In this document: positions 9,001-52,400 of the stretch, one piece after another
How positions within the stretch are numbered: the first letter of the stretch is position 1
Layout: each line of letters opens with the position of its first letter
Made by a program: the position numbers and the translations under genes
Notes under the pieces: generated by a model
What the model was told of the DNA's origin: nothing
Database searches by the model: none
The model's input: only the letters and a program-made list of their open reading frames with translations
Source of the DNA: Phallusia mammillata
Taxonomy: Eukaryota
Direction of reading: 5' to 3'
Assembly (NCBI GenBank): GCA_965637545.1
Contig: OZ281497.1
Coordinates: 16,988,001-17,052,000 of the forward strand
DNA: 64,000 bases

Positions 9001-10606
9001 TCGTGTCACAAAAAACTGACTCCAACTCCATTAATTCGCTAGATCAGTTAGCCATGGCAATCCTACGTCGTTGGCTTATATTGCTATGAGAACATGGGTG
9101 GCAAACTGTCAAATTATAGGTAGGCTATACACAAGACAGGGTCTTAGCCTAAATAGTAGCTCAAATAAAAACCAAACTGCCAGAGATGTTTCGACAAAAA
9201 CAATTGGCAAAACATTATATTTTCACTGATGATGACAATTCTTTTTGTCGAAACGTCTGTTTAATAAAATGGGGTTTAATACGCTTATTTTACATCGCTA
9301 GCAATTTGGTTTTTAACTAGAAGGGTGGCTTAGCACATATTGCCCTTGCATATACACTGTGGGTCCCCACACATGCAAAGTTGAAAATAATGCAATTCAA
9401 GAGATAACCATGAGAAAGTCGGGTGTTGTAAGGTAAAACACAGTGATCGGCACTGGGCTTAAATAATAATACTATGTAGAATACAAACTATAAAATTAGA
9501 TTCACCCCAGATATTGTTTGAAGTATGTCCTATTAAACGTTTTAAAAAACTGACCCATTTTAGGGGGCTAGTAGGGCAACTAATTGGGTTCGACACACAA
9601 ACTAAAAAATATATAAAAACCGCAATGACTCAATCAATAGTACTGCAAAATTTCAACCCAATCCGCCAAACTTCCGGGTAAAAATACCCATTTTAGGGGG
9701 CTAGCGGGGTAAATACTGGGGTTATCAACAAAAACAAAGTGGGATGCACATCTACATAACTATATCTACCATCTGTGTAAATTTCAGCCAAATCCATCAA
9801 ACATTTGATGGAAAAACGAGTCGGACAAACTTTGGGAAGAAAAAAAAAGAAAAACAATTCGAGTAAAATCAATATGTGTCCCCTTCAGGGAAGGGGACCC
9901 ATAATAATGTCCAATTATAAATTTGCAAAAAGACTGTTAACCTACTTTCCGTAAGACTGTTAACCTACTTTCCGTCAGCTTTGCCCAAAGTTACATTTCG
10001 ACTGCAACACTACACAACATCTTTGACAAAACGATTATATCACCTTTTTCAGTGACAGCCATTACCATGTCGGACGGGACATTGCCTGGCTCCATGCAAG
10101 TGCGGCTGCGGTGGTATCACGGCCTAACGACAATGCTTTACGTCACCTCGCTCAGTATTTCCGTGGCAGTGACGTTACTCTACTCCTTTTTCGAGATGGA
10201 CAACAGCTCGGGTGACAAGCAGATGTCAGCTGGCAACTTTCACTTGCACTTCGTTAACTCATTGCTCATTCTCATCGATTTCGTTCTCAACTGTATCCCC
10301 ATACGACTACTGCACTTTATTTATGTCTCGGTATTTACAGTGGCCTACTGTACTTTTCTCTTTGTGCTCCATGTAACAGGCGTGGACTCAGCATTGTACG
10401 AACTTGTGGATTGGAAAAGAAACACCAAGTGGGCTATTGCGTTCAGCATAGGCATGATATTTCTCATTGCACCAGCCACTCACACTGGCATGTACTTCCT
10501 ACAACGAATAGTCCGCTTTTTTAGTTCCCGGACGAAGCGAGAGACGAGAAACGCGTCGGTTGTGGATGAAGAGAAAGAAGATTCTCCGCAGTTATTGGTT
10601 TACTGA
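6088..10606 (+). CDS. Protein rolling stone-like multi-pass membrane protein, 3 exons, about 313 aa
   Basis: Exons 6088-6174 (MTCQ...DFARSQ), 6485-6785 (WNIGQRKFLAYRALV...YLSHW) and 10053-10606 (...FHLHFVNSLLILIDFVLNCIPIRLLHF...LYELVDW). All junctions are GT-AG and phases are consistent (0, 1). Motifs are typical of rolling-stone-like proteins. Confidence 0.85.
9315..9908. mobile_element. Helentron/DINE-1-type non-autonomous element (HINE-like) in intron 2 of the rolling-stone-like gene
   Basis: Subterminal inverted repeats cacatattg (9334-9342) and caatatgtg (9870-9878). The second is followed by a 9-bp hairpin gtccccttc-agg-gaaggggac (9878-9898) and an A/T tail. Internal 19-bp direct repeat acccattttagggggctag at 9553 and 9686. 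Ends are approximate. Confidence 0.6.
9930..9975. repeat. Perfect 23-bp tandem duplication
   Basis: aagactgttaacctactttccgt x2 (9930-9952, 9953-9975). Confidence 0.9.
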
Positions 10607-36755: not shown

Positions 36756-39700
36756 ATGTCTGCCCCAGTGGTGCTGCAACTGCCTACAGTGAGCTTTTCC
36801 AAACACAAGAAAAAGCACAGTGCTTGTACAACATCATCAGTTGGCACTAAGCAGACAGAAAACACGGATGTAAATCCTCAATCAGATGATTCTTCAGTTA
36901 CTATTATTCCTGTTGTGATAGATTTTGAAAGGTTGTTAAAAAAAGAAAACAAAGTTCAAGAACAAGTAAGATTTTTTATTCAATATAATGTAAATACGAA
37001 ATCATGCAGTTCTCAGTTACTGTTGCAAATTGTGTGACATTGCTATAATGAACCTAATCAAACAAGGTGTCAAGGCCCTTTTGTGTGTTTTCAAATATAT
37101 TATGTATGTATACATATTTATTTATATGTATCATATACGAACAAAACTACCATTTTTGTTTGTCACACACTGTTTTTGTTTTTGGTTTGTTCAACATTTT
37201 GATTCAAATATTTGGTTGACATAATTATCTTACATATGGTTATTTTTAGGTGGTTGAAGGGGTAGAAAACAAGGACTTATTGTATGGTGTTGCCAACCTT
37301 TATGGAATTTCACTTCCTGAACTGACAGATGACATTATATATCCTACTTTGTGTGAAAAGTGGTCAAAAACTTTGTTGCTGATAAGACAAGAAGATGAAG
37401 TAATTAAAGATTTAAGCCAACAAACAAGAAAAATAAAGGATCTTGGAAAGTTGGAAACTGACATTAAAGACAGGGGTAAGTTAGACTGATGTATAACGTT
37501 ACAAACAGGTTTTGTTATTTGTGGTTGACTTCAAGCAGTTTGACTTTACCAGTAAATAGATATATACTTTGATTTGACTATTAATAAGTCATTTTAACAG
37601 TTTTTAATTAATTTTCTGTGAAAAATATATTTTTGTTATTTTTACATCCTGCCAAAAGCATTGAAAGTTTGTCATTTTTTACATCCTGCCAAAAGCATTA
37701 AACTATACACTGGTTTTGATATTAACACAAAAATGACCATTGGTAGAAAAAGCTGCAGCTATTTCGGAGCAAGCTGTAAACATCTTCAGTGATGATGAAT
37801 CAGCAGATGAAGACGAAGACGGTAGTGATGACAACTGGATGTTGCAAGTCACAGAATTTCTTCAGCAAGTTAAAGATAGATACAAAAAACGTCAGGAGTA
37901 AGTTAACTATGTTTGTAGTTTGGTGTTTATCAAGATAGTCTACCGAGGTCACAAATTTTTGGCAGATTTTATGAATCTCAAAAATCCAAAATGGCTGTCG
38001 GAGATGATGCCAAAACTTCTGTTTCTAAAGACTTAATTGGTAAGCATAATATTTATTATAGTGTGAGCAAATGTTGTTTTTTAAAGGCAACAAATATTTG
38101 TGCAATAAGTAAATTTTGTGCAAAAATCTTTATTTATGAATTCTGATCGTCCAGGTGTTGAAAATCGCATTGTGGCTAGTGCCACGTTTGAACGTTCCTA
38201 TGAAAAGCCTGGACAGAGGGTTATACAGCTGACATTAATTGCTGTAAGGAAGAAGTACCGATATCTTGGCATTGGTCACTATATGATGAAGCAGATTCAT
38301 GACTCCACTATAACTGGTGGCAGTGATGTAATAGTAGTGAATGCTGATCAAAACGCAGTGGACTTTTTTGAAAAAGAAGGTTAGACAATTGGTCCTTAAA
38401 GTATTTCTACTTGTTGCATTCAAGCGTATATATAATATACAAAATTGTACAAAAACATAAATTTGAAAAATTAAAAATCAACATATAAACAACTAACTTT
38501 GACGAAATTTAAATAAACTTCTAGGTTTTACTGATGATGTACTGCTCAATAGTCCTTATGCACATATTGGGGACATTTGGTTCAACAGCAAGAGGATGTG
38601 CTTTCTTCCCTCATATGTGTCATCAAGTGTTGACAGAAGTGCACTAAACTCGTTGCCTCCAGAGTTTGATCCTAGCTTGACAGAACTAGATTTAAGGGAA
38701 ATGGAATTGGAAACAGCGTTGTGGAGGGAGAAAAGCTTGCAAGTACATCAATAGTTTAAATTAAAGTAAAAAATTTGACAAAAGTTGTATCTGCTTTTTA
38801 TCTGTTTAAATAAGTACTGTACCTCATTATCATTGTGAGATTTGCTTGGTACATTTATACTACATATGTTGCATCCAAAGTAGGAAATTGCCTGTAATGA
38901 ACTTTGTGCTCACAAACTATGATGATGTACTACACATTTTAGTTTTCTATTAGTCTTCCTACAATGACAATTTTTTTATCTGCAATGCAATAAAGTTTTT
39001 TTTATTGGAAAATCAAACCTTCTGTACAGCTAAAAAATGTACAGAAGGCCAGCAATTTGTGTCAAGAACAAACTCATTGAATCCATTCTCCACATTGTTC
39101 CTTAAAAAGATTTGTTGGTAATGTTTTATAATTACAGGCATACCAATCTCAAGTCCTTATTGTGCGTCGAATGCGACAAGAAGTTCTCACTCTCAGAGCA
39201 AAACTGGCACTGCAGGATGAAATGATAGCAAATCTTCAGCGGGAGCTTGAAATAGCAAAAGAATCAAAACTTGCATCTCAAGAGAGTCACCTTAGAAAAC
39301 GTCTAAGCAAACTTCGTGAAGCAATGTTAGACCTAGAAGAAGAGGTCAACTTAGGAAATGAAGGTGTTTATACTATTACTATTTAAATTATGTTGTTGTT
39401 TTTAAATTCAGAATCTCCTAAAACACATGCTGTCATTTCTAAAAAAAATCTGTTCCTTTCATATTTTTTATAGGTTCAACTGAAGCTGTAGGTGCAACTG
39501 AATCACTTTGCTCTTCTTCAGCACAAGATAATTCATCATATAAGTCAGAAACCAGTCAAAGTCAGGTCAAAATTATATCAACTGATTTTCCTTGCACTAG
39601 TGAGACTGATCCAAAACTTTCTGAAGATGATCAAACCAGTGGCAAAGCATCACAAGATTCTGTTCAAGACACTGTAGTTGGCTTGCCAGTCCCAAAATAC

Positions 39701-40318
39701 CAAAAACAGGATGAAATAAAAGAGCTTGCTCTAATGGAAATAAATCATTGCTTTACAGCCAGCATGGACAGTGGTGAATACAACTTTAGTGGCACAGCAT
39801 ATCATGTTACAAATATTGTCAATACATTGTCTGCAATGCCATCTCCCACTGTGGTCCAGCTATATGAGCAAACCAGACTTAAAAGTTGTCACCCAGACAT
39901 AGTTGCCAACCTGTACTTTTGCGGCACTCAAGGATCACTGACCAATGATAGAATGCTGGATATTCTTACAAAGGGTTTTAGCACCGAGGACTTTGCACAG
40001 AGCGAGTATGGAATTGGGTTACATTTTTCAAGACATGCTCGTGCAGCAGCAAGGTTTTCACCAACAGGGAAGATTCTTGTTGCTAAGGTCTGCCTTGGAA
40101 GTACCCAGACTGTTACAGCAAAAGATCCATGTCGTAGTAGTCCACCAGATGGACATGATTCAATACTTACTCAAGGAAGATTGTCATCCATGTCAGAGGG
40201 TATGTCAAGGGGACATTTCTACTCAAGATCATCCAACACTGGATCTAGTGAATACATTGTGTTCGATGTACACCAAGCGCTTCCTCTTGCATTTATTGAG
40301 TACAACCTAATTTTTTAA
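36756..40318 (+). CDS. Uncharacterised protein: GCN5-like GNAT acetyltransferase domain + coiled coil + C-terminal PARP/ADP-ribosyltransferase-like domain, 8 exons, about 724 aa
   Basis: Exons 36756-36965, 37250-37475, 37747-37897, 37966-38039, 38155-38379, 38525-38742, 39138-39363 and 39474-40318 join in one frame (2175 nt). GNAT motif A is [13 protein letters not shown] and motif B is NADQNAVDFFEKEGF. PARP-like motifs: LYFCGT, KGF, YGIGLHFS, VAKVCLG, PPDGHDS, EYIVFDVHQALP. Confidence 0.85.
37639..37699. repeat. 24-bp direct duplication in an intron
   Basis: tttttacatcctgccaaaagcatt at 37639-37662 and 37676-37699. Confidence 0.85.
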
Positions 40319-40542
40319 AATTGTTAATTTTTTTGCAAATCCGGTGTGCGAGTGAGTGCCAAAATGTTAGACTCAGTTGTGACGAAAAGATACTACAGCA
40401 CACCTGACAAAACTATCCTCTTTATTGCATGCTTACTACTTGTTTCTTCCATAAACTTCTTGTTTTGCATGTCATTTTTAAGTCCACTATTCCTTACACT
40501 GTGAAAAGTTTTGTTTAGTTTTGATGCTTGTTAGTGCCAACT

Positions 40543-40593: not shown

Positions 40594-43500
40594 ATGCCAT
40601 TGATTGTGGAACTGCCTGATGAAATTCCGTCAGAAAACACAAGCAATTCAACAATACCCTTCAATACAAACACAGTAAGTTGCACATTTTTTGTGATTTG
40701 AAAATAAATGTTTTCAAACTAAATCTCAAAAACTTTGGAAACTAAAACTTTTTGTTTTAAAGACCATATATGGCAACCAACATTGCTTTCTTTGAACTTG
40801 GACTTTTTTCATTAGGTGATAAAATTTAAAAGAGAAGTCAAGTTTTAATTCCTTTAAGTCATTGCAGGAAGGTGAAAGTGAACCAATTGCTGTCTCTGAA
40901 CCATCACCACCAATAGAAACTGTCACGGAAAATGCTCCAAATATTGAAGATAAAGAAGAAGTTTTAGATGCTTCTGAGTCGTCTCCAAACTATGAAGCCA
41001 CCCAGGAAGACTTTACGGAGTGGATTGCCAACACTGATGATGAATCAATGTCAGATGTCACATCTACAGCTGGATCAGTATCAACTGTTGATGTGTGTTG
41101 CTTTGCATTACTCTTTACTTTTAATATGTAACACAGTTTTTTTTACTGTGTGCTAGTGGTACAATGTACTGACCATAACTTGGTAAAGAAACAAAACAGA
41201 GATTTTTGTTTCTCATAATGCTCAAGAAAATAGAGAACAAGAATCAGTGAGGTGGAAGGCCGAAGAGAAAAGAAAATTTGTTTTGGTCTAATGAGACAAT
41301 AGTGATAAGTAGTGAGTGGTAGTATTATGCAACATGGGTTAATAGAAGTGTATAGGTATAGTGTATTTTGTATTTTTCCTTTTTGAATTTTGTTTGTCTA
41401 TTTAGGAAAAACAAGACATGGAAGACACAAGAGAAGGTAATTTATTTAAAAATATATGAATTTATTTCAAGTTTTTGTTTTGTGAACTTATTTCTCTTAG
41501 GTTCAAGATGTGGGATTGACATGGAGAAGCTGGAAACCCTGTATCCAGGATGGAGACTTTCATCTGATGTCAAAAGTGTTCAGAGAAGAAGATATGGCAA
41601 GTTAAACTCTCATAATATTGTAGTGGTTTTGCTACTTATAGAAAGCTAAAGCTTAACCTTATGTTGTTAAACCCTCCCCCTTTATTTAACTTTTACAGAG
41701 GATGTAAAAAAGCGCCAAACCACTGGAAGAACAGTGGAAGATTTTGTACAGGACATGAAGCAGCGTTCGCTTGTTCATGGTGTTACTGAGTGTGTGGAAA
41801 AACCTGCACCTGGAGATGCAAAGCCGAAGCCAAACAAGTCAAAAAGTGTTTCATTCACACAAGATTTGAAACCAAACAATAGCAATGCTAATAAGGCACC
41901 AGAATCTAAAGAGCCAAGTATGTTTAACTTGTCAACTATACTTTATATTGTTACAACACACCTAATATCATTTATTGTGTTTGACAGAAGATACTACAAC
42001 TTCCACTTATTATGAGGTAGGAAGTGCTGAAGCCGAAGCCAAAAACCAGGAGAATTTCGAGAAAAAGGATGAAGCATGGTAGTAACTCAAAAAATTACAT
42101 GAAAGTTTATGAAACATTGTCTCATGGTAACCTTGTAATTTTTGTACATTAGTGATGTGCTTCAAAAAGTGGAAACTGCAGAAGAAAGAAGAAAGCGCGA
42201 AAAAGAAGAGGAAGAAATGTCGAGATATCCAAGGTAATGGGAGTTTTTGTCACAGGCCAAATCTTCTGATGTCAATTCATGCGCAACTTTGTTTTCTAGG
42301 ATGACAAAGGATGCTTTAAAAAAGATTTGCAAACAACACAAGCTTTATTCCACTCCATACCTCAATGATAACTTATATCTTCATTACAAAGGTGCTTGTT
42401 GATTTTATTGAGTTCTATATATTGGTTATGTTGTGCTCTTGTGCCATTTTACTTTATATTCAATCACTTTTCAATTCATTCAGGATGGTGGAGGATTGAA
42501 AATCTTGATGAATACACTGGATTGAAATGCATATGGCTGGAAGTTAATGGTTTAAGGAAGATTGAAAACCTTGAAAAACTTACTCAGTTGAGGTAAAGAT
42601 GGTTTGAAAAATTCCAGCGTTTATATGTATGTGTATGTCAAATTTGACTCCAACAAGCTATATTGCAGAAATTAATTGTATATCCGGTCTATCATAACAC
42701 ACCGTTTTTTTTTCCGGTAGATGCCTCTACTTGCAGCAGAACCTAATAGACAAAATAGAAAATTTGGAAACACTTCAGGATCTACGAGTGCTTAACCTAT
42801 CCAACAACCAACTCCTGAAAGTCGAAAACCTGTGTAAGTAAAATAATAACTTTCTCATTATTTTGTTACATTACGATTCCTATGTCGATACATTATAAGC
42901 CCGAACAGGTAGTAACAGAAATAAAATATTAGGGACGTACACCTCTGAAGGTATGGGGTTTAGGGTTCGAAAGAACAGATATCTCAGTGGTGCAATACCA
43001 TTAAACCCATCGCCAACCCCAACGACTCCCAGGGATTTGTCTGTATCGACTACTAACCAGTTATTGCACCAGTTTCTGTTGTTCGAACCTACTCCGAGTT
43101 AAGTAGAAAAACTAAAAGTGAATGGGTGAGAGACTTTCACTGTGAGGGTTTCTATTAAAACAAGTATAATTCCCAGAATTAACTTTTGCAAAATTTTACA
43201 GCTTGCCTTCCCAGGCTGGAAAGCCTCCAGATGGCTCACAATCATTGCTGCACCGTTGAAGCGCTCGAGCATCTAAAAGAGTGCAAAGAAATAAGTGTGT
43301 TAGACCTATCGCACAACAGGATTGACGATCCAGCCGTTGTTGACGTGTTTGAAGCTATGCCTAGTCTTGTACGTATATTTGTACACATTGTGTTAAAATT
43401 ACCAAACATTTTATAGGCTATGGCTAAAATTTAAACTGCAATTATAAGGAAGCTGTGTGCTTTTAATATTGTTCTTTTGCTGTCACTAACTTTCAAATAG

Positions 43501-45604
43501 TTTTATTTTCGTTTGTTTACGGTTGTTGTTGTTGTTGTAAGTTGAGAGTTAATAGCACCATTTTACCAAAACATTACGTTTCTTACAGAGAGTACTAAAC
43601 CTAATGGGAAATCCTGTTATCAAGAAAATCAGGTTCTATCGAAAAAACTTGATCGTGCGGCTTAAGGATCTTACCTACTTAGATGACAGGTATAAAAACG
43701 ATTAATTGATTACCCCTAGACAAACGCAATGTGTTTGACCAAGGAAACGTTATTTTTTTGTCCAATTAGGCCTGTTTTCCCACGTGACCGCGCATGCGCA
43801 GAAGCATGGCATCGTGGTGGTCACGAAGCAGAGAAAGCAGAAAGGCAGCACTGGGTCAACAAAGAACGACAAAAGATACAGGTACGTGGAATTTTCATTC
43901 TATGGTTGTTTTACGTATGTGCGATTAAATTATACGTCTTATGTTTTATGTTACTTTTTGCCCTGACAAAATTCCGTAAATTATGCTGTCTTTTTTCCAG
44001 GACAGTATCGATTATCTGCACAATGTAAGGATAGAGGCACAAGCTAAGAGAGAGGATTCTGGAGTTACCTGTAAGTTGCATGTAAGAGATAACTTGTGGT
44101 TGCAGGAATGAACGTTTGCCAAGGAAGTGCCCAAACTCAGCAAGTCATACAAGTATGTTACGTTATTCTTTTTCTATTTTAAGTGGAATCGAAGGTCACC
44201 CCTGTCGAAATGTTTGAGCCAAAGATACCCGGTGAAGAGACGACACCACCAGAGGGCGCCGACGAGGCGAAAGAAAGTACAACAGACGGAGATTCCAAAC
44301 CTGAAGCTGAGATGATCAACAATGAGGAGTCAGAAGTTAAGTCAGACAACAAATTGTTACAAGAGGAAGGAAAATTTGTCACTGAAATTCCAGGTATCAG
44401 AATAAATCTGTGGGTTTATGGTTGGTAAATTTTAGAAGCAAATAGATTGTCGTAATTCTGTTGCTATAGGCATGACAAAAGCTGCTCACAAATGTGTTGT
44501 TATCCAAACGCTAATAAATCGGTTTGTTTCATATATATAACTGTATTTGTGTTTCGTAGATGAGGAATCCATCGAAACTATTGAGTTAAAAACGGATGAC
44601 AACAGCAAGTTCGACCTTGACGATTTGCCCGACCTTGAAGATGTGGAAATTGACGAGCTGGGCGGCGTATCCAGCATCAACTTGCTGGTAAGTTATTATA
44701 CAATGCTATAGTTGTAGATAAAATAAGGTCATTGTTAAGGTGAATCCAAAGCAAAAATATTAACATCAAGTCAATACAAACATCCTAATTAAATCTTCAT
44801 ATTTTTTGACAAAACAAAACTTCTAATCTAGAGCAGACAGATTCCAGAAGCGACTAAACTTTACTGTTTTCATCATTGTTTATCATTTGATTGCAATGTA
44901 TTTAGTCGGAAAATCGACCTAAGATAGAAGTTTTGGAAAACAACTACGTTGCCGAAGCGGGAAGCAAAACTAAAATATCAGACAAAACGTACAGCAGTGA
45001 AGGTCAATTTCAGAGGTTGCTCATTGAAGATGTTACTGAAAAGGTGGGTTGAATTTGGTAAAGCTCCCGATATAAACTTTTGGGCAAGGCGTTGTCGGTT
45101 TTGGCTCTGTGTTTGCTCGCCTTGAAAGTGATACACGGTATGCGTTTTAAAATCGGTAAATATCTTTTGATATGCAGATGTTTTACAGTAAAGTTTTTAA
45201 AACTACACAGGCAAGTTTCTCGCGATTTGTCGTGACAAACTTTTCTTGCCATGATCTAATGAGATTTGAAACATTTTTTTCAATTTTTTGTGGGTATCGT
45301 ATATGCAAGTTTCACTACACCCTACCCTATAGATAAGCATCGACAAGGTGGACATAAAGACATTTCTAAACGTTTCTGCGTGTTACAGAATGAAGAAAGC
45401 AAATCAGAAAATTTAGCAGACGGCGGATCCGGTGATACTGCTGATGATGCAAAAGGTGAGAACAGGTGCCCTACTCTTAGCCACGTGGAGTAGGATTTTG
45501 GTTCTTGGTGTTAGTCATTACGGAGGATAATATTTTTGTTTACATTAGACATACAGACACATTCGAAAGACAATGAAGACGAACTGGAATTTGGACTTGA
45601 TTGA
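40594..45604 (+). CDS. DNAAF1: Dynein axonemal assembly factor 1 (LRRC50/ODA7), 19 exons, about 717 aa
   Basis: Signature [34 protein letters not shown], followed by LRRs ([35 protein letters not shown]), [18 protein letters not shown] and DDLPDLEDV. The exons from 40594-40674 to 45549-45604 sum to 2154 nt in frame, with one GC-AG intron. Confidence 0.93.
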
Positions 45605-45885
45605 ACTTCGTTCGGTGCAAAACATTTTCCATGATACTGTGGCGAAGTTGTTTGAAGGCAATATCCAAGGCTTGTCCCTTCAGAATACACCTCGCTACAG
45701 GACAGCAGTTTAAACTTTCTGTGCTTTTGCTGTGCTGCTATTGTTTAGTTTGGGATTTTACTTATTTTCGTTTCTTTTTTATACTTTAACTCTTAGTATG
45801 TATTTTAGTGTGTGGTGCTTCATTTACTTATTAAAAAGATTTGTGTTAAAACTGTGACCTTTTAAAGTCGTGTATAAATTTTGCG

Positions 45886-46041
45886 AATAAAAAGTTTTAA
45901 ACCTTCATTTGATTGTAATGTCTTTGAATTTTTGGTTAGTTGATTAATTGGAACGAGCCGCTAATTCATTGTCGTGTACGCAGTGCTTTAGTCGTAAATA
46001 TGTGTGTCACTCATCCACTATTATCTACTTTTATGACGTCA
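45886..46041 (+). promoter_or_regulatory. DNAAF1 poly(A) signal and a CRE site in the putative HOOK promoter
   Basis: AATAAA at 45886-45891. Perfect TGACGTCA at 46034-46041, about 420 bp upstream of the HOOK ATG. Confidence 0.4.
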
Positions 46042-46458: not shown

Positions 46459-49400
46459 ATGAAAATGGAATCCTCACAGCTATGTGACTCATTGATTATC
46501 TGGGTATGTATTTTTTGTAGTAAATCTAAATTCATTTATGTTGCTGTTACGGTTAACTATAGTTTTAAATGTTAACTGCAATCAGAATTACTGCTTTTTA
46601 TATTTCATATGGAAATGACTAAACCTTATTATTCATGTTGTCTTAGATATCGGGGTTTAAAATATCGTCACCAAACCGACATATCCATGACTTGACTGAT
46701 GGTGTTGCCATGGCAAAGATATTAAATCAAATGTAAGTAAAATAGGTGGTTAAAAGTAGTCCTGCAGTGACATGTTTATAAATTTAAGTAGTTAAATCAC
46801 AATTCAGGATGTTTACTACAAAGTCGTAGGTGAACATCTTTCAAACCAAAAACTGTTTTTATTTTGTGCACAGGGATTCTGCATACTTCAACGAAGCATG
46901 GATTGGAAGAATAAAATCTGATGTTGGTGATAACTTTAGATTAAAGGTAACATAGCTTGTCATGCTATTGTCCAGCATTTGATTTAGCTGATAAATTTGA
47001 TTCTTAAACTTGTGTATAGTCCAGAAACAAATTGTTACATTTAGTTTTTTGATGTAATTGTTTTTGGCCTAAATTTAAGCCCACCAGGCTAAATTTTCAA
47101 TTTGTTGCATTTTGTTTGCAGACAAATAACCTCAGAAAAGTTCTCAACCACATTGTGGACTATTTTAAAGAGGTATTTTATGGTGTGATAAGCTTAACAT
47201 TAAACTCAATCAACCAGTATATAGAACCAGGTCATGAACCTAATGTCTAAATCTTCAACATAAAACAGCTAATAAAAAATTATGTACTTCTAATTTCTAA
47301 GTTGTTAATTTGTATTTGGTTTATTGCATTTATTATGGCAATCTTTTCCAGTTAATTTAAGCTTTTCATCATGACTACTTTAAAAAATATTAAAAAACTT
47401 TATTAGGAAGTACAATTTGTCTTTTAAATGTTCATTTGTAAGCCTGATTGAATTTGTTAAATAATATTCTTGTGTATGAAGGCAGCTTTATCAACGTGAT
47501 TCATGCTTTGCTGTACTGTTATTTGTTTAATAGGTCAGTGGCAATCAAATTGTAGGCTATGACATGCCAGATGTGTCACTTGTCAGCGAAGTGGCAGATA
47601 AACATCATTTGGGAAGGCTCCTACAGCTTATGCTTGGGGTTGCAGTAAACTGCCCAGGAAAACAACGTAAGATTTTACTTTTTTGTATGTAGGGATGAAA
47701 TTAGCCATGACGTTCATGTTTTATTCAATGAAATGCCATATAATAACCAAATGCAGTGTCATACCGTTTTTCTCTCAAACACCACTGTACATGGTTAATG
47801 TTGACTTCCAATTAAGTGACACATTTAGGACTTGTAGCCTTATGGCCTAAGTTAAGGAAAACTTCAATGCACAACACAACATAATACAGATTTTACTAAA
47901 CAACAAGTTTTAACTTTCATCTACTTTGTATACATAGACTACATTGAAGAGATTATGAAATTGGATGAAGATGTACAACATGTAGTTATGACAGCTATTC
48001 AGGTAGGCAAACTATATGCAAAATATGGGTACATGTATAACAAGGCTGTCATATTTTTTCTGTTTTTGAAATATTTTACTAACACATATATGCTTGATAT
48101 TCAACAGGAGCTGATGCAGCATTACCGACCATGCTCTGATACAGTAGATGGTGAAGCACCTGCCACAGTGGACAGCGATATGTCACAGCAGCTTAAAGTG
48201 CTAGAGGAAAGACTTGCTGATGCTGTGGCTGAAAGGGAAGAAATGGCTCAGCGATGTCATGACCTTGATATGCAGGTTGGTATTTGATATTAAATTGTGT
48301 TCACATGACTTGTACATGTTTTTACACGTCAACAGATATTATGAGACAGCTACCTTACACAATTTATTCTGCAGCATTTTTTGAAGCATCATAGGATTTT
48401 GCAAACTGCAGTGCATGGTTGGCTAGCCTTGTGTATGGTCCCTGTTCACTAGTTTGGTGGTCTTGTATCTTGGTTTAAATTAACTGTCCTTACAAATAAC
48501 AAATGTAATATTTAAATGTATTCAAAACTAGGACAGCTCCAGTAAACATCATAATAGGACGCAATGATTTGTTGTATTTGCAATTGGGTCAAAATGTGTG
48601 CATTTGGAGCAAAGAACAGTTGTGCAATTTTATAATTGTAATCTTTGATGTATTATACCAATAATATGGGGTATCAGTGCAGATAGGTAATATTTAACCA
48701 TTTATGTTGAAATGCTGTATAATTTTGGATTGCAGTATACTTAACCACAAATATTCTTGCAAATTTACCCTTAGGGAAGCACACAATACTCTCTTCCAAA
48801 CTATAATCAGTATTTAGTGTTCATACACTATTCTCTTACAAAGTACAATTTGGGTTTAGTGTTGTTTGTTCATGGAAGATGTCTAGTTTAATTTTGGTAT
48901 AAGTTCTATGTTTGTAACTGTGCAGCTAATGTCTACAACAACCCATTTGCAAAGCCTACGTTGTGATTATGCTGTACTCCATGACAAGGTGACATCAACA
49001 TCCCACATGTGCACACAGATTTTGACATACCACATGTTAATGGCATGTAAAATCAGGGTCCGGTCATCATGGCAATGCTTGCATTGGTATAAAACACTTG
49101 CTTCAAGGGTCAATGATCACATAAATCCTGTTACATGATAACTTGATCATGTTGTCAACTTTTTATATTCAATGCACAGAAACATAGTGGCCATGCATGT
49201 TCTGAAACCAATTTGTTTGTCAAGTTGTCACACCTGTGTATAGGTGTTATGCTATTTCATGTGTTAAACATTTAAAGACTTGTTGCCATTCTACATTGTT
49301 ATGATTACCTTTGTAGGTTGCAATGGTACATGAGGAAAAGGCCAATTACCTTCAAGAGAACACAGATCTCCGACAGCGACTCAACCAACTGGAGAACTTG

Positions 49401-52400
49401 GATGACCCCTCATCACCTGCATCCCTTCGACACTCCCAGATGATGAATCAAATAGCAGAGCTGCAGGAGGAAACATACAAGTAAGAAAAAATATTCTGTG
49501 TTGTCCTGACTTAGTTGAAATAATGCAGTGATAGAAAAAAGTTATTGTTTGGTTGCTTGTGTAGGTTGGAGGCTTCGAGGGATGATTACAAGTTGAAATG
49601 TGAAGTTGTTGAACAAGAGTTGATTGACACACAGAACAAAGTGGATGAACTTGCCACGCTGGCTGAAGAATCAAGGTAGCACTTATACAACATATATATT
49701 GACCTTGTGATTTAAACATAATGTTAAGTTTTAAAAGGCTTACTGGTATATATGTGTTGAAAACAATGGCAGGTTGTTGAAAGATGAGATCGACTACCTT
49801 CGTCCAGCATCAGAAAAAGCATCAAAACTTGAATTGACTATTGAAACCTACAAGACTAAGTTAAAAGAACTCACAGACCTTCGTGGTCAGGTTTGTCTAT
49901 TAGTTATTATAGTCACTCTTTTAAAAGTTGTGTTTTTTTACAATTTCCTTGCATTTGTGTTTTCCACAACACAAAATTGGTGCATACAGTGTTAGTTAAA
50001 CAATGACAAGCTTATACAATTTCATGCCAGGTCAAGCTGTTGGAAGACAAAAACACTTCCTACATGGAACGAACCATAGACCTGGAAGAGGAACTCAAAA
50101 AGGCCAATGTAGCAAGATCACAGCTTGACACTTATAAGAGACAGGTATTTTTCATGTTTTTGGCCAAGAAACGCTTCATCTTCCCAATAGAAAACTCAAT
50201 GTACAAATTGCATTATTAGGTTCTGGATCTCCATAACAAACTTTCAGAGGAAACTCGGCGAGCTGACAAAGCTGAATTTGAAATTAAGACAAGAACAGAT
50301 AAAATTAAAAGTCTTGAAGGCGAAAAGGAGGTAATGTTATATACTTTAACAAGCTTTTTATGTTACACCTGTACATAATGTATAACAATATCTTGATGTA
50401 CAACTATTGCCTTGCCCTTGATATGAGATGATACAATTTCTTAGCTCTGTATTTAACCCGCTTTGTCATGTTTCAGAGGTTACAAACTGAACGAGACTCA
50501 CTACGTGACACAAATGAGGAATTACAATTTACCTCACAACAAGGAAACTTTATGAGTGAGCATCTTCTCGGCTCAGGAGAACCTGGAAGCCCAGGACATG
50601 AAAACTTCAACCTATCACCCCTGGAAATGAAGTGAGTCCACAAATCTACTAAAACTGTTTGAAATTGGGGCAACTTATTTATTCAAAGCAATCTTTTACT
50701 GATTATAAATGATTTATAAACAGGGAAAAATTAATTCGCCTTCAACATGAGAACAAGATGCTGAAAGTACAGCAGGGTGAGTTGGGTGATGAGAGAGTTG
50801 TTTCGTTAAGCAGCGATCTGGAGCTTGCCAATTCCAGGATCAACGAGCTGGAGACAGAAACCAGGTGTGTAAATTATTGATTCAATGTCAACATACCGGC
50901 AAAATGGCAGCTAAGCCAATATTTACATATGTGTATCACACTCAACCCTTGATTTTGTAGTGTACTATTGTTACAAATAAACATTGTATTATATATGAGG
51001 CAGTTGACTGTTTTTTGGGAAACATTTTTAGACACAGTAAAAAAGAAACACACATTTGTAGGAAATTGTGACATTTTGTCTCCCTTCACAAATATGCAAA
51101 GAATGTTTATACCACTCAACAACCCAGTCATAAACCACAGTGGTGACTGACTGTAACTAACTCAGTTAATAATAGCCAGCCATAAACATTAGACCTAAAG
51201 AGTTTTAGTGGACAGTACCAGTATTGGACTTGCCTCTGCTGTTTTTTTACTCTTTCTCACCACTATATTGATATTTAAAGTCTCATGCTAGGGACTGATT
51301 ATAATGATTATGGCTCCTTGAGCAATAAAAACAAAATTTGTATGATGATATCTTCTTTGTGCAAAGTTTATATTTCATATTTTTTCTCGTCCACAGGTTA
51401 GGTGGAAGAAGAGTGATTGAACTTGAATCTCAGGTAAAAGATTTGCAAGACGAACTGCAAGTAAAAGGAGCAAGCTCTGAAGATGTAAGTTGCATGAAAT
51501 ATGTTTATTGGGCTGTAATGGTGTTTCAACTGACATGCATCACATCATATGTGTGTTTCACATTGTTAAGTTACACAAAAAACGTTTTCTGCCCAAAATG
51601 TAAAATAACCTTGCATTTTTACCTCATTGACATTTCGAAAAATATGTCCATAAAATTTAAGTAAGACATAATCACTGTCATAAGTTTTGTTGTGTAGTTA
51701 TGGCCATGTTGTAAACTTGTTTTCACATAATACTGCAGTACGATTTATCCACAAAGGAGTGGAGTTAACATATGTATTTTTTCCTGTCTTGGATGTGCAT
51801 AACTAATGCCTGCACAACTTATAACATTCTTGCCTGCATTTCTTGTTTGTGTGATACAAGACAATGCATGACGGCTTGTTCTTATTTTGCATGTTCCCAA
51901 CTACAGCCTCATGTGAGTATACAATGCATGTTGTCATGTGCTTTTAGCTGTATGTTGGCAATAAACTATAATGCTGCTTTGAATTGATTAACTATAATAA
52001 AGAAAAGCTTCATTAATACATTGATAGTGAAATCATGGGATCCTTGAGTTTTTGTACTTGTGGTATATATATATACAGGATTTGTTTATATTTAAAAGTA
52101 GCCAATCACTTGTACTTGAAATTCTATATTTTCATCATTTTGTGGTTGCCGTGTTTTGTTTTTTTCATTGCATGCACTGCAGTTTTTTTGTGAGTCACTA
52201 TTTGTGAATATTGGGTGCGGGTATAATTTATTTAAATGCATTTTTGGTTTGAAATAGCTATTGTTAAGTTTAATGATTCATTTTTGTTTTAACTATGTTT
52301 GCTACCTTCTGACCCCCTACACATGTGAAATTAGTGTTGGTAGTGTATATTAAACCTGTGACTACTTTTTCCAATTCGCGAAACATGTTGTGATATTTGT

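Follow-up and report, generated by a model that had tools for sequence, protein, structure and literature searches.

A gene of the tunicate Phallusia mammillata, read on the + strand from 36756 to 40318 of a 64-kb window (positions 16,988,001 to 17,052,000 of contig OZ281497.1; all coordinates below are those of this window, the whole stretch of DNA that was analysed), encodes a protein in which a predicted histone acetyltransferase (HAT) domain of the GCN5/PCAF type is joined to a predicted ADP-ribosyltransferase (ART) domain resembling that of the tankyrases. It is practically certain that this gene is the orthologue of Ciona intestinalis LOC100181199 within an ancient eukaryotic family of fixed architecture, that it is transcribed as one messenger RNA (mRNA), and that both domains and the coiled coil between them are under purifying selection. 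The architecture of the family starts with a HAT domain, which a helical hairpin and an acidic loop divide, and continues through a coiled coil and a variable linker to the tankyrase-like ART domain. An earlier note on this DNA, made from the sequence by eye, had described the fusion and pointed to altered catalytic residues in both of its domains.

Spliced from the window as the earlier note had proposed, the eight exons give an uninterrupted open reading frame of 2175 nt for a protein of 724 amino acids (aa), with GT..AG ends at all seven introns. Parts of the window are present in twenty public runs of Phallusia mammillata, several of which contain just under half of its words, approximately what exons only would give. 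Four public runs from three studies were aligned to the window (the RNA label of the runs is a guess), and in their spliced contigs all seven introns are excised at the predicted sites. The joint 39363/39474, which links the HAT half to the ART exon and which the earlier note had singled out for confirmation by transcripts, is present in each of the four runs and in all three studies; a 1582-nt contig (run X2, record 10) runs through exons 5-6-7-8 unbroken to 40082, beyond the Cys and His codons of the ART domain, and another contig connects exons 1, 2 and 3. Because contigs that have lost the genomic introns can come only from processed transcripts, the two halves are not separate genes: they are one gene, transcribed and spliced into one mRNA. 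The 3' untranslated region covers at least 40319-40432 on the + strand, with transcript contigs ending at 40343 and 40432. The four codons on which the argument about catalysis turns lie exactly where the earlier note had placed them: Gln245 (CAG, 38226-38228), Cys593 (TGC, 39920-39922), His627 (CAT, 40022-40024) and Glu703 (GAA, 40250-40252).

The transcripts also show some variation. Intron 3 (68 nt, 37898-37965) is kept in one contig (run X1, record 1) and spliced out in run X2; if it is retained, a TAA as the third intron codon would end the product after aa 196, ahead of the HAT core. At 37283 the assembly has T where the contigs of X1 and X2 have C, changing Tyr82 to His, the residue that the family consensus has there ('L-L-H-A-V'). 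Further differences between transcripts and assembly are silent at 38616 and 38652 and change Ile525 to Leu at 39716.

The N-terminal half is, on profile and modelling evidence, a HAT fold of the GCN5/PCAF type. With the exons scanned singly, exon 5 matches the Pfam model Acetyltransf_10 at 32.1 bits (cut-off 23.6), and Acetyltransf_1 likewise passes its own threshold. A profile of the N-terminal half of the family, run against all PDB sequences, finds Tetrahymena GCN5 (6.5e-14), human KAT2A and PCAF (~1e-9) and yeast Gcn5 (5e-8), and the next GNAT families, GNA1 and NAA50, reach only 1e-5. The structure considered here is an AlphaFold model of the HAT half of the Ciona orthologue (predicted local distance difference test, pLDDT, 85.9), the Phallusia HAT half being studied via the family alignment. 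The best 30 Foldseek matches of this model are all GCN5/PCAF. VIA-align places it on PCAF with Z 19.9 (root-mean-square deviation, rmsd, 2.2 Å over 154/157 residues) and on GCN5 with Z 19.7, followed by KKT23 (Z 15.4) and NatD (Z 14.8). The by-eye alignment to GCN5/PCAF in the earlier note was therefore right at the level of the family, by profile and by fold, with a match over the whole 160-residue HAT domain and GCN5/PCAF as the best profile match in the PDB, although sequence identity to GCN5/PCAF is only ~17%.

What does this half share with GCN5/PCAF? The common elements are an alpha1-alpha2 'LP....(Y/I)....V......KT' block, motif A (R/Q-x-x-G-x-G), motif B and the C-terminal 'GF(S/T)xD ... 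TLM' strands. Exon 1 (36756-36965, aa 1-70) carries the start codon, a basic N-tail and, from about aa 48 (36897), the first HAT strand; a transcript contig begins at 36751, and the joint 36965/37250 leads into exon 2 (37250-37475, aa 71-145), where transcript joints and the profile alignment to Tetrahymena GCN5 place alpha1-alpha2 and beta2 with a GCN5-like 'LP...KT.L.I' block. The HAT core, beta3-beta4-alpha3-beta5-alpha4, is in exon 5 (38155-38379, aa 221-295), located by the Pfam GNAT models and the profile alignment. It contains motif B (A-D..A..F-F) and, as R-Y-L-G-I-G at 38259-38276, the acetyl-CoA motif A (R/Q-x-x-G-x-G/A), which had been reported as intact. Across 81 aligned family sequences, the sample for all residue counts given here, both motifs are almost invariant, motif A having its R in 72/81 and its final G in 80/81. 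Exon 6 (38525-38742, aa 296-368) holds the final HAT strands (G-F-T-D-D ... M-C-F) and then the start of the coiled coil, again by transcript joints and profile alignment.

The differences from GCN5/PCAF are threefold. First, the family-profile alignment puts Gln245 opposite the general-base Glu of strand beta4 in GCN5/KAT2 (yeast Gcn5 E173, Tetrahymena E122), as the earlier note had proposed; across the family this position is Q or H. Second, an insertion of ~100 residues, two helices and an acidic Ser-rich loop, separates beta2 from beta3. The acidic segment suspected of splitting the HAT fold is thus real, and it is conserved. It spans aa 121-217 (37400-38029), beginning in exon 2, continuing through exon 3 (37747-37897, aa 146-195), where transcript joints, a cross-phylum motif and the Ciona model identify an acidic Ser/Asp/Glu-rich loop followed by a conserved insertion helix, and ending in exon 4 (37966-38039, aa 196-220; joints 37897/37966 and 38039/38155). 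In the Ciona model two long helices flank a disordered acidic loop, and the motif common to the phyla consists of a Ser-rich, acidic stretch ('F-S-D-(S/T/D)-E...') and, after it, a helix with a basic end. Third, neither a bromodomain nor any other Pfam domain was found in any exon or in 18 full-length homologues, so that the KAT2 bromodomain/SAGA/ATAC-type architecture is absent. There is no PCAF-homology region, and the HAT half continues into a coiled coil and an ART domain.

The conserved coiled coil occupies exon 7 (39138-39363, aa 369-443), which gives weak coiled-coil Pfam matches only and has a mean identity of 0.32 across phyla, against 0.15 for the linker. Exon 8 (39474-40318, aa 444-724 and the stop codon) continues with a Ser-rich linker to 39703, in keeping with the coiled coil and Ser-rich linker previously read ahead of the ART domain, and then encodes the ART/PARP-like domain itself (39704-40315), defined by Pfam, profile and structure model. 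These three approaches agree with the domain call of the earlier note. Exon 8 matches the Pfam model PARP (PF00644) at 31.2 bits (cut-off 26.7); the family ART profile finds tankyrase at 2.5e-13 and ZAP at 1e-10 in the PDB, where exon 8 as a single sequence gives only a marginal match to PARP3. The AlphaFold model of the Phallusia ART domain (pLDDT 90.4) superposes on tankyrase-2 and tankyrase-1 with Z 18.5 and an rmsd of ~3 Å over 163-176 residues (domain residues 3-205; Foldseek E 3e-10), followed by PARP3, PARP1, PARP4, PARP10 and ZAP. The C-terminal end of the protein is thus, as modelled, a tankyrase-like ART fold.

Several tankyrase/PARP features persist in the fold. The Gly that follows triad position 1 is there, as is the G-x-G-(L/I)-(Y)-F-S strand; the second stacking position is still aromatic, and 'E-Y-(I/V)-(V/I)-F' still supplies the Glu of the catalytic position. 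However, the triad differs. In place of H-Y-E (or H-Y-hydrophobic), the family-profile alignment sets Cys593, His627 and Glu703 opposite the His, Tyr and Glu of tankyrase-1, upholding the C-H-E triad that had been proposed for Phallusia; in the family at large it is C-Y-E, and the His is absent from 75/75 aligned members. Of the pair that anchors nicotinamide (G863/S904 in PARP1, G1185/S1221 in TNKS1), the Gly is kept as Gly594 and the Ser is replaced by Ala635 (40046-40048), which is near-invariant in the family. The second stacking Tyr of PARPs is Phe in the family column (Phe638 in Phallusia, 40055-40057). The protein also differs from tankyrases and other PARPs in having no SAM domain, ankyrin repeats, WGR or helical regulatory domain.

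The earlier note had compared the domain with the pseudo-PARPs TASOR and TEX15, a comparison that found no support. No match to DUF3715 (PF12509) appears in the Pfam scans of the exons, where PF00644 is the sole domain reported for the ART exon at E up to 1, and TASOR is not among the best 50 structural matches, which comprise tankyrase, PARP1/3/4/10 and ZAP. With no DUF3715 match and with tankyrases as the nearest structures, kinship to TASOR/TEX15 was rejected. TASOR, TEX15 and ZAP likewise have an ART fold and a non-canonical triad and work non-catalytically, and ZAP is among the closer PDB matches; their triads, however, lack the Glu (PMC7955679), which the family described here keeps, and none of the three is fused to a GNAT domain.

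How widespread is this architecture? An exhaustive HMMER (phmmer) search with the ART domain alone retrieves only 65 clusters among 1.84 billion representatives, many of them proteins of 600-730 aa matched at their C-terminal end. This is far below the number expected from canonical PARP families, and none of the clusters looked up was canonical. By blastp, the spliced model aligns with the Ciona protein (P0112), its closest named homologue, at 47.5% identity over residues 1-439 and at 49% over residues 528-721, and collinear, nearly full-length alignments extend to Haliotis (P0019, residues 46-720) and Latimeria (P0020, residues 5-720). The Phallusia protein is therefore collinear with the family over the HAT half, the insertion, the coiled coil and the ART domain. 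It also has the signature residues (a small residue at triad position 1, the Glu, Ala at the nicotinamide Ser, Q at the GCN5 Glu position and the acidic 'F-S-D-(S/T/D)-E' loop), with a single departure, His627 for Tyr, that it has in common with other tunicates.

A word search with the full-length family alignment returns 61 proteins, and the named sources of these and of three cluster look-ups, pooled, range from a glaucophyte to amphibians. They include cnidarians (Nematostella, Actinia, Stylophora, Orbicella, Oculina and Desmophyllum), the placozoan Trichoplax, and among protostomes many molluscs, a brachiopod, nemerteans and a flatworm. Invertebrate deuterostomes are represented by sea urchins, sea cucumbers, a sea star, a hemichordate, four amphioxus species and Ciona, and vertebrates by lamprey, elephant shark, sawshark, bowfin, coelacanth, frogs and salamanders. 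The non-animal named source is the glaucophyte Cyanophora paradoxa, whose protein, like other homologues, contains both Pfam domains. No amniote, arthropod, nematode, fungal or land-plant protein is among the named matches, a non-observation and not proof of absence. Two marine metagenome contigs (L004, 636-2363; L005, 546-2273) carry a single intronless open reading frame of 575 aa (P0037) with both Pfam domains, and the fusion is therefore proven independently of any splicing model. Two further tunicate-like loci have the same exon order.

Some of these homologues have peculiarities of their own. The intronless protein, whose source is probably a picoeukaryote, has Ala at triad position 1 and reads 'G-W-Y-F-S'. 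On ENA contig L001 (~9899-10600), which carries a 41%-identical relative, the predicted protein P0002 opens with three tandem degenerate ART fragments ('...S-P-T-N-D-R-L-D-N-I-V-P-D-G-F-T-S...') upstream of an intact ART exon, which looks like a local partial duplication. A 1199-aa protein of Branchiostoma lanceolatum (P0011, named 'TNKS2' at source) combines a reverse-transcriptase Pfam match with the coiled coil and ART domain of the family; it is probably a gene-model chimera with a misleading name.

The earlier note was correct that catalytic residues are altered relative to GCN5 and PARP1, but these changes are not peculiar to the Phallusia gene. Opposite the GCN5 Glu, 40 family sequences have H (mostly lophotrochozoans), 32 have Q (deuterostomes, cnidarians and protists) and one has E. 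Triad position 1 is C in 63, A in five, G in three and S in two, and never H; at position 2, 69 sequences have Y and six have H (tunicates and two nemerteans), and the triad reads S-H-E in Ciona and C-H-E in Phallusia; position 3 is E in 70/72. Alignment columns of this kind indicate that the family has had the altered residues since its origin and that they are not damage in the Phallusia gene, the change from Tyr to His, in tunicates and nemerteans, being the only one that is lineage-specific. Recent decay was rejected as the cause of the missing GCN5 Glu, Q or H being found family-wide with protist members included. A catalytic cysteine at triad position 1 was also rejected, since what is conserved across C, A, G and S is a small side chain and not thiol chemistry. 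Among 16 distant members, the HAT core has a mean pairwise identity of 0.39-0.46, the ART domain one of 0.36 and the coiled coil one of 0.32, compared with 0.15 in the tails and linker, a pattern indicating that HAT, ART and coiled coil are all under purifying selection.

What might such a protein do? The earlier note had suggested a scaffold that senses acyl-CoA or NAD metabolites, a chromatin or RNA reader, or an enzyme with changed chemistry. The picture favoured here, judged from sequence features, is an acetyl-CoA-binding HAT coupled to a non-canonical ART; taken alone, its chance falls somewhat short of even, and the complete statement, in which family identity and architecture stand together with this mechanism, is given a chance slightly above even. 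The HAT module would still bind acetyl-CoA because motifs A and B are near-invariant, and it would be slow by the GCN5 mechanism because the general-base Glu is absent. In yeast Gcn5, changing this Glu to Gln lowers the rate by two to three orders of magnitude; many GNATs, on the other hand, work without a dedicated general base. Acetylation by the module may thus be slow, may follow a route that needs no base or may depend on a partner, and the His found at the base position in lophotrochozoans could itself act as a base. Basic substrates, for example histones or sperm nuclear basic proteins, could plausibly dock on the acidic Ser-rich loop, and the protein probably dimerises through its coiled coil. 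The ART module, with its pocket Gly, its aromatics and the Glu at the catalytic position retained, and with a small residue for the His that contacts NAD+ and Ala for the nicotinamide Ser, is most likely no canonical poly(ADP-ribose) polymerase. Its role would be to target or regulate the HAT, as a module that binds a ligand or substrate in a non-canonical way or, at the most, as an atypical mono-ART.

Canonical PARylation is held to be unlikely because of the Ser to Ala change and of a precedent in plants. The PARP3 group of land plants (Clade 1D) has a C-V-E triad, with Cys for His and the Glu kept (PMC2964712), and it is the only described PARP group found in which Cys in place of the triad His is combined with the Glu; its moss member is C-Y-E, like the family described here (PMC2964712). 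Plant PARP3 is inactive and does not bind NAD+, and the change of H-Y to C-V in AtPARP1 abolishes the synthesis of poly(ADP-ribose) (PMC6701155). In contrast to the HAT-ART family, plant PARP3 has a PARP1-type architecture (BRCT, WGR and helical domain); it is an unrelated clade, and the Cys is thus convergent. The near-invariant Glu and pocket residues argue against a dead ART domain and so favour a non-canonical binding module or an atypical mono-ART.

A role in the male germline is suggested solely by a zebrafish gene of shared name. In juvenile gonads of male-like type this gene, si:dkeyp-50b9.1, ranks with the 25 that show the strongest up-regulation, and nearly all of the 25 are strongly testis-enriched, meiotic and flagellar genes included (bioRxiv 10.1101/650218).

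Several points weigh against this picture. The HAT fold was modelled from the Ciona orthologue and not from the Phallusia protein itself, and single tunicate sequences (exon 5, and the Ciona HAT half) match a generic bacterial GNAT (1q2y) first in PDB searches, reaching GCN5 only at E 0.1; for this reason it is the family profile and the fold that carry the GCN5 assignment. The predicted binding of acetyl-CoA and of NAD+ is read from motifs only. The plant PARP3 precedent also lacks the Tyr, which the HAT-ART family mostly keeps, and the strict long-term retention of the Glu and of polar ART residues (R664, D672, S673 and R679) fits an active enzyme at least equally well. As to the germline, the zebrafish link is a name given by automatic annotation to coelacanth and elephant-shark proteins.

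It is possible, though we consider it unlikely, that both domains are active, the protein acetylating and mono-ADP-ribosylating the same substrates (e.g., chromatin proteins) with a non-canonical mode of NAD+ binding in which a small residue stands for the His. The Glu in 70/72 sequences, Cyanophora included, the pocket Gly, Tyr and second aromatic, the near-invariance of motifs A and B and the equal conservation of the two domains would all be accounted for. However, the His is missing family-wide, the nicotinamide Ser is Ala and in tunicates the Tyr is also replaced, and replacing H-Y by C-V is enough to kill the activity of AtPARP1 (PMC6701155). The HAT domain would in addition have to function without the base Glu of GCN5, whose loss by mutation to Gln costs the yeast enzyme two to three orders of magnitude in rate.

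Alternatively, and just as improbably, neither domain would catalyse anything, the protein being a coiled-coil scaffold or reader that binds metabolites or modified partners via two former enzyme pockets, in line with the sensing scaffold suggested in the earlier note. The absence of canonical catalytic residues from both domains family-wide speaks for this, and precedents are known in ZAP/PARP13, which is among the close PDB matches, and in TASOR, which is listed in PMC7955679. Such a loss of function in both halves is difficult to combine with the near-invariant pyrophosphate-binding motif for acetyl-CoA, motif B and ART Glu. Typical pseudo-PARPs, moreover, lack the Glu, and many GNATs need no dedicated base.

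A third possibility, more doubtful still, is an ancient enzyme class that has gone unrecognised, in which a GCN5-type acyltransferase is combined with an ART pocket remodelled at the origin of the family so as to use or sense a different dinucleotide, linking acetyl-CoA and NAD-type metabolism, with male germ cells of aquatic animals as a possible setting. The triad His normally contacts the 2'-OH of the adenosine ribose. Its loss at this contact would make NADP+, O-acetyl-ADP-ribose and the 3'-phospho-ADP moiety of CoA candidate ligands.

Finally, an artefact, either the misjoining of adjacent GNAT and PARP-like genes or a decaying pseudogene, is so improbable that it can be set aside: nothing was found in its support beyond the retention of intron 3 in one contig (X1 record 1), against which stand spliced contigs bridging exons 5-8, an intact frame of 724 codons, the same exon order in two tunicate-like loci, an intronless two-domain reading frame in a protist-like metagenome contig and more than 60 full-length homologues.

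Among the neighbours, the next gene downstream (~40860-46000, + strand) starts just a few hundred bases past the 3' end of the HAT-ART gene and contains leucine-rich-repeat exons (e.g., 42247-42402, 42396-42596 and 43186-43416; Pfam LRR_4, 30.9 bits). These exons fit the earlier call of an adjacent, putative DNAAF1. It is followed by a HOOK-family coiled-coil gene (~47955-51700, + strand; e.g., 49323-49484; Pfam HOOK, 40.2 bits).

The earlier note had recognised no named gene in this architecture, and indeed all homologues are called 'uncharacterized', 'hypothetical' or by a bare domain label, with the coelacanth and elephant-shark proteins bearing the zebrafish name, and no paper describing the family was found. 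Searches by gene identifiers and by architecture terms ('GNAT-PARP') gave no paper on any member, the zebrafish name occurring in one expression list only. The GNAT-fused clade is absent from two surveys of PARP evolution (PMC2964712, PMC4245714), and the catalogue of human ART-like proteins (PMC7955679) contains nothing similar; moss PARP3 excepted, no C-Y-E member appears in the two surveys or the catalogue. Member sequences are already public with automatic domain labels, but no description seems to exist of the family itself, of its age or of its conserved non-canonical sites. That it is unseen in amniotes would explain why it has been overlooked.

Few protein-modifying enzymes have been studied as much as the PARPs and the GCN5-type acetyltransferases. 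In this family both pockets are constrained and yet lack the textbook catalytic residues, which makes it a clean test case for what the two folds do without the canonical base and NAD+ contacts. It can be studied in tractable models (zebrafish, Ciona/Phallusia, Nematostella and sea urchin) and may point to a link between acetylation and ADP-ribose/NAD biology.

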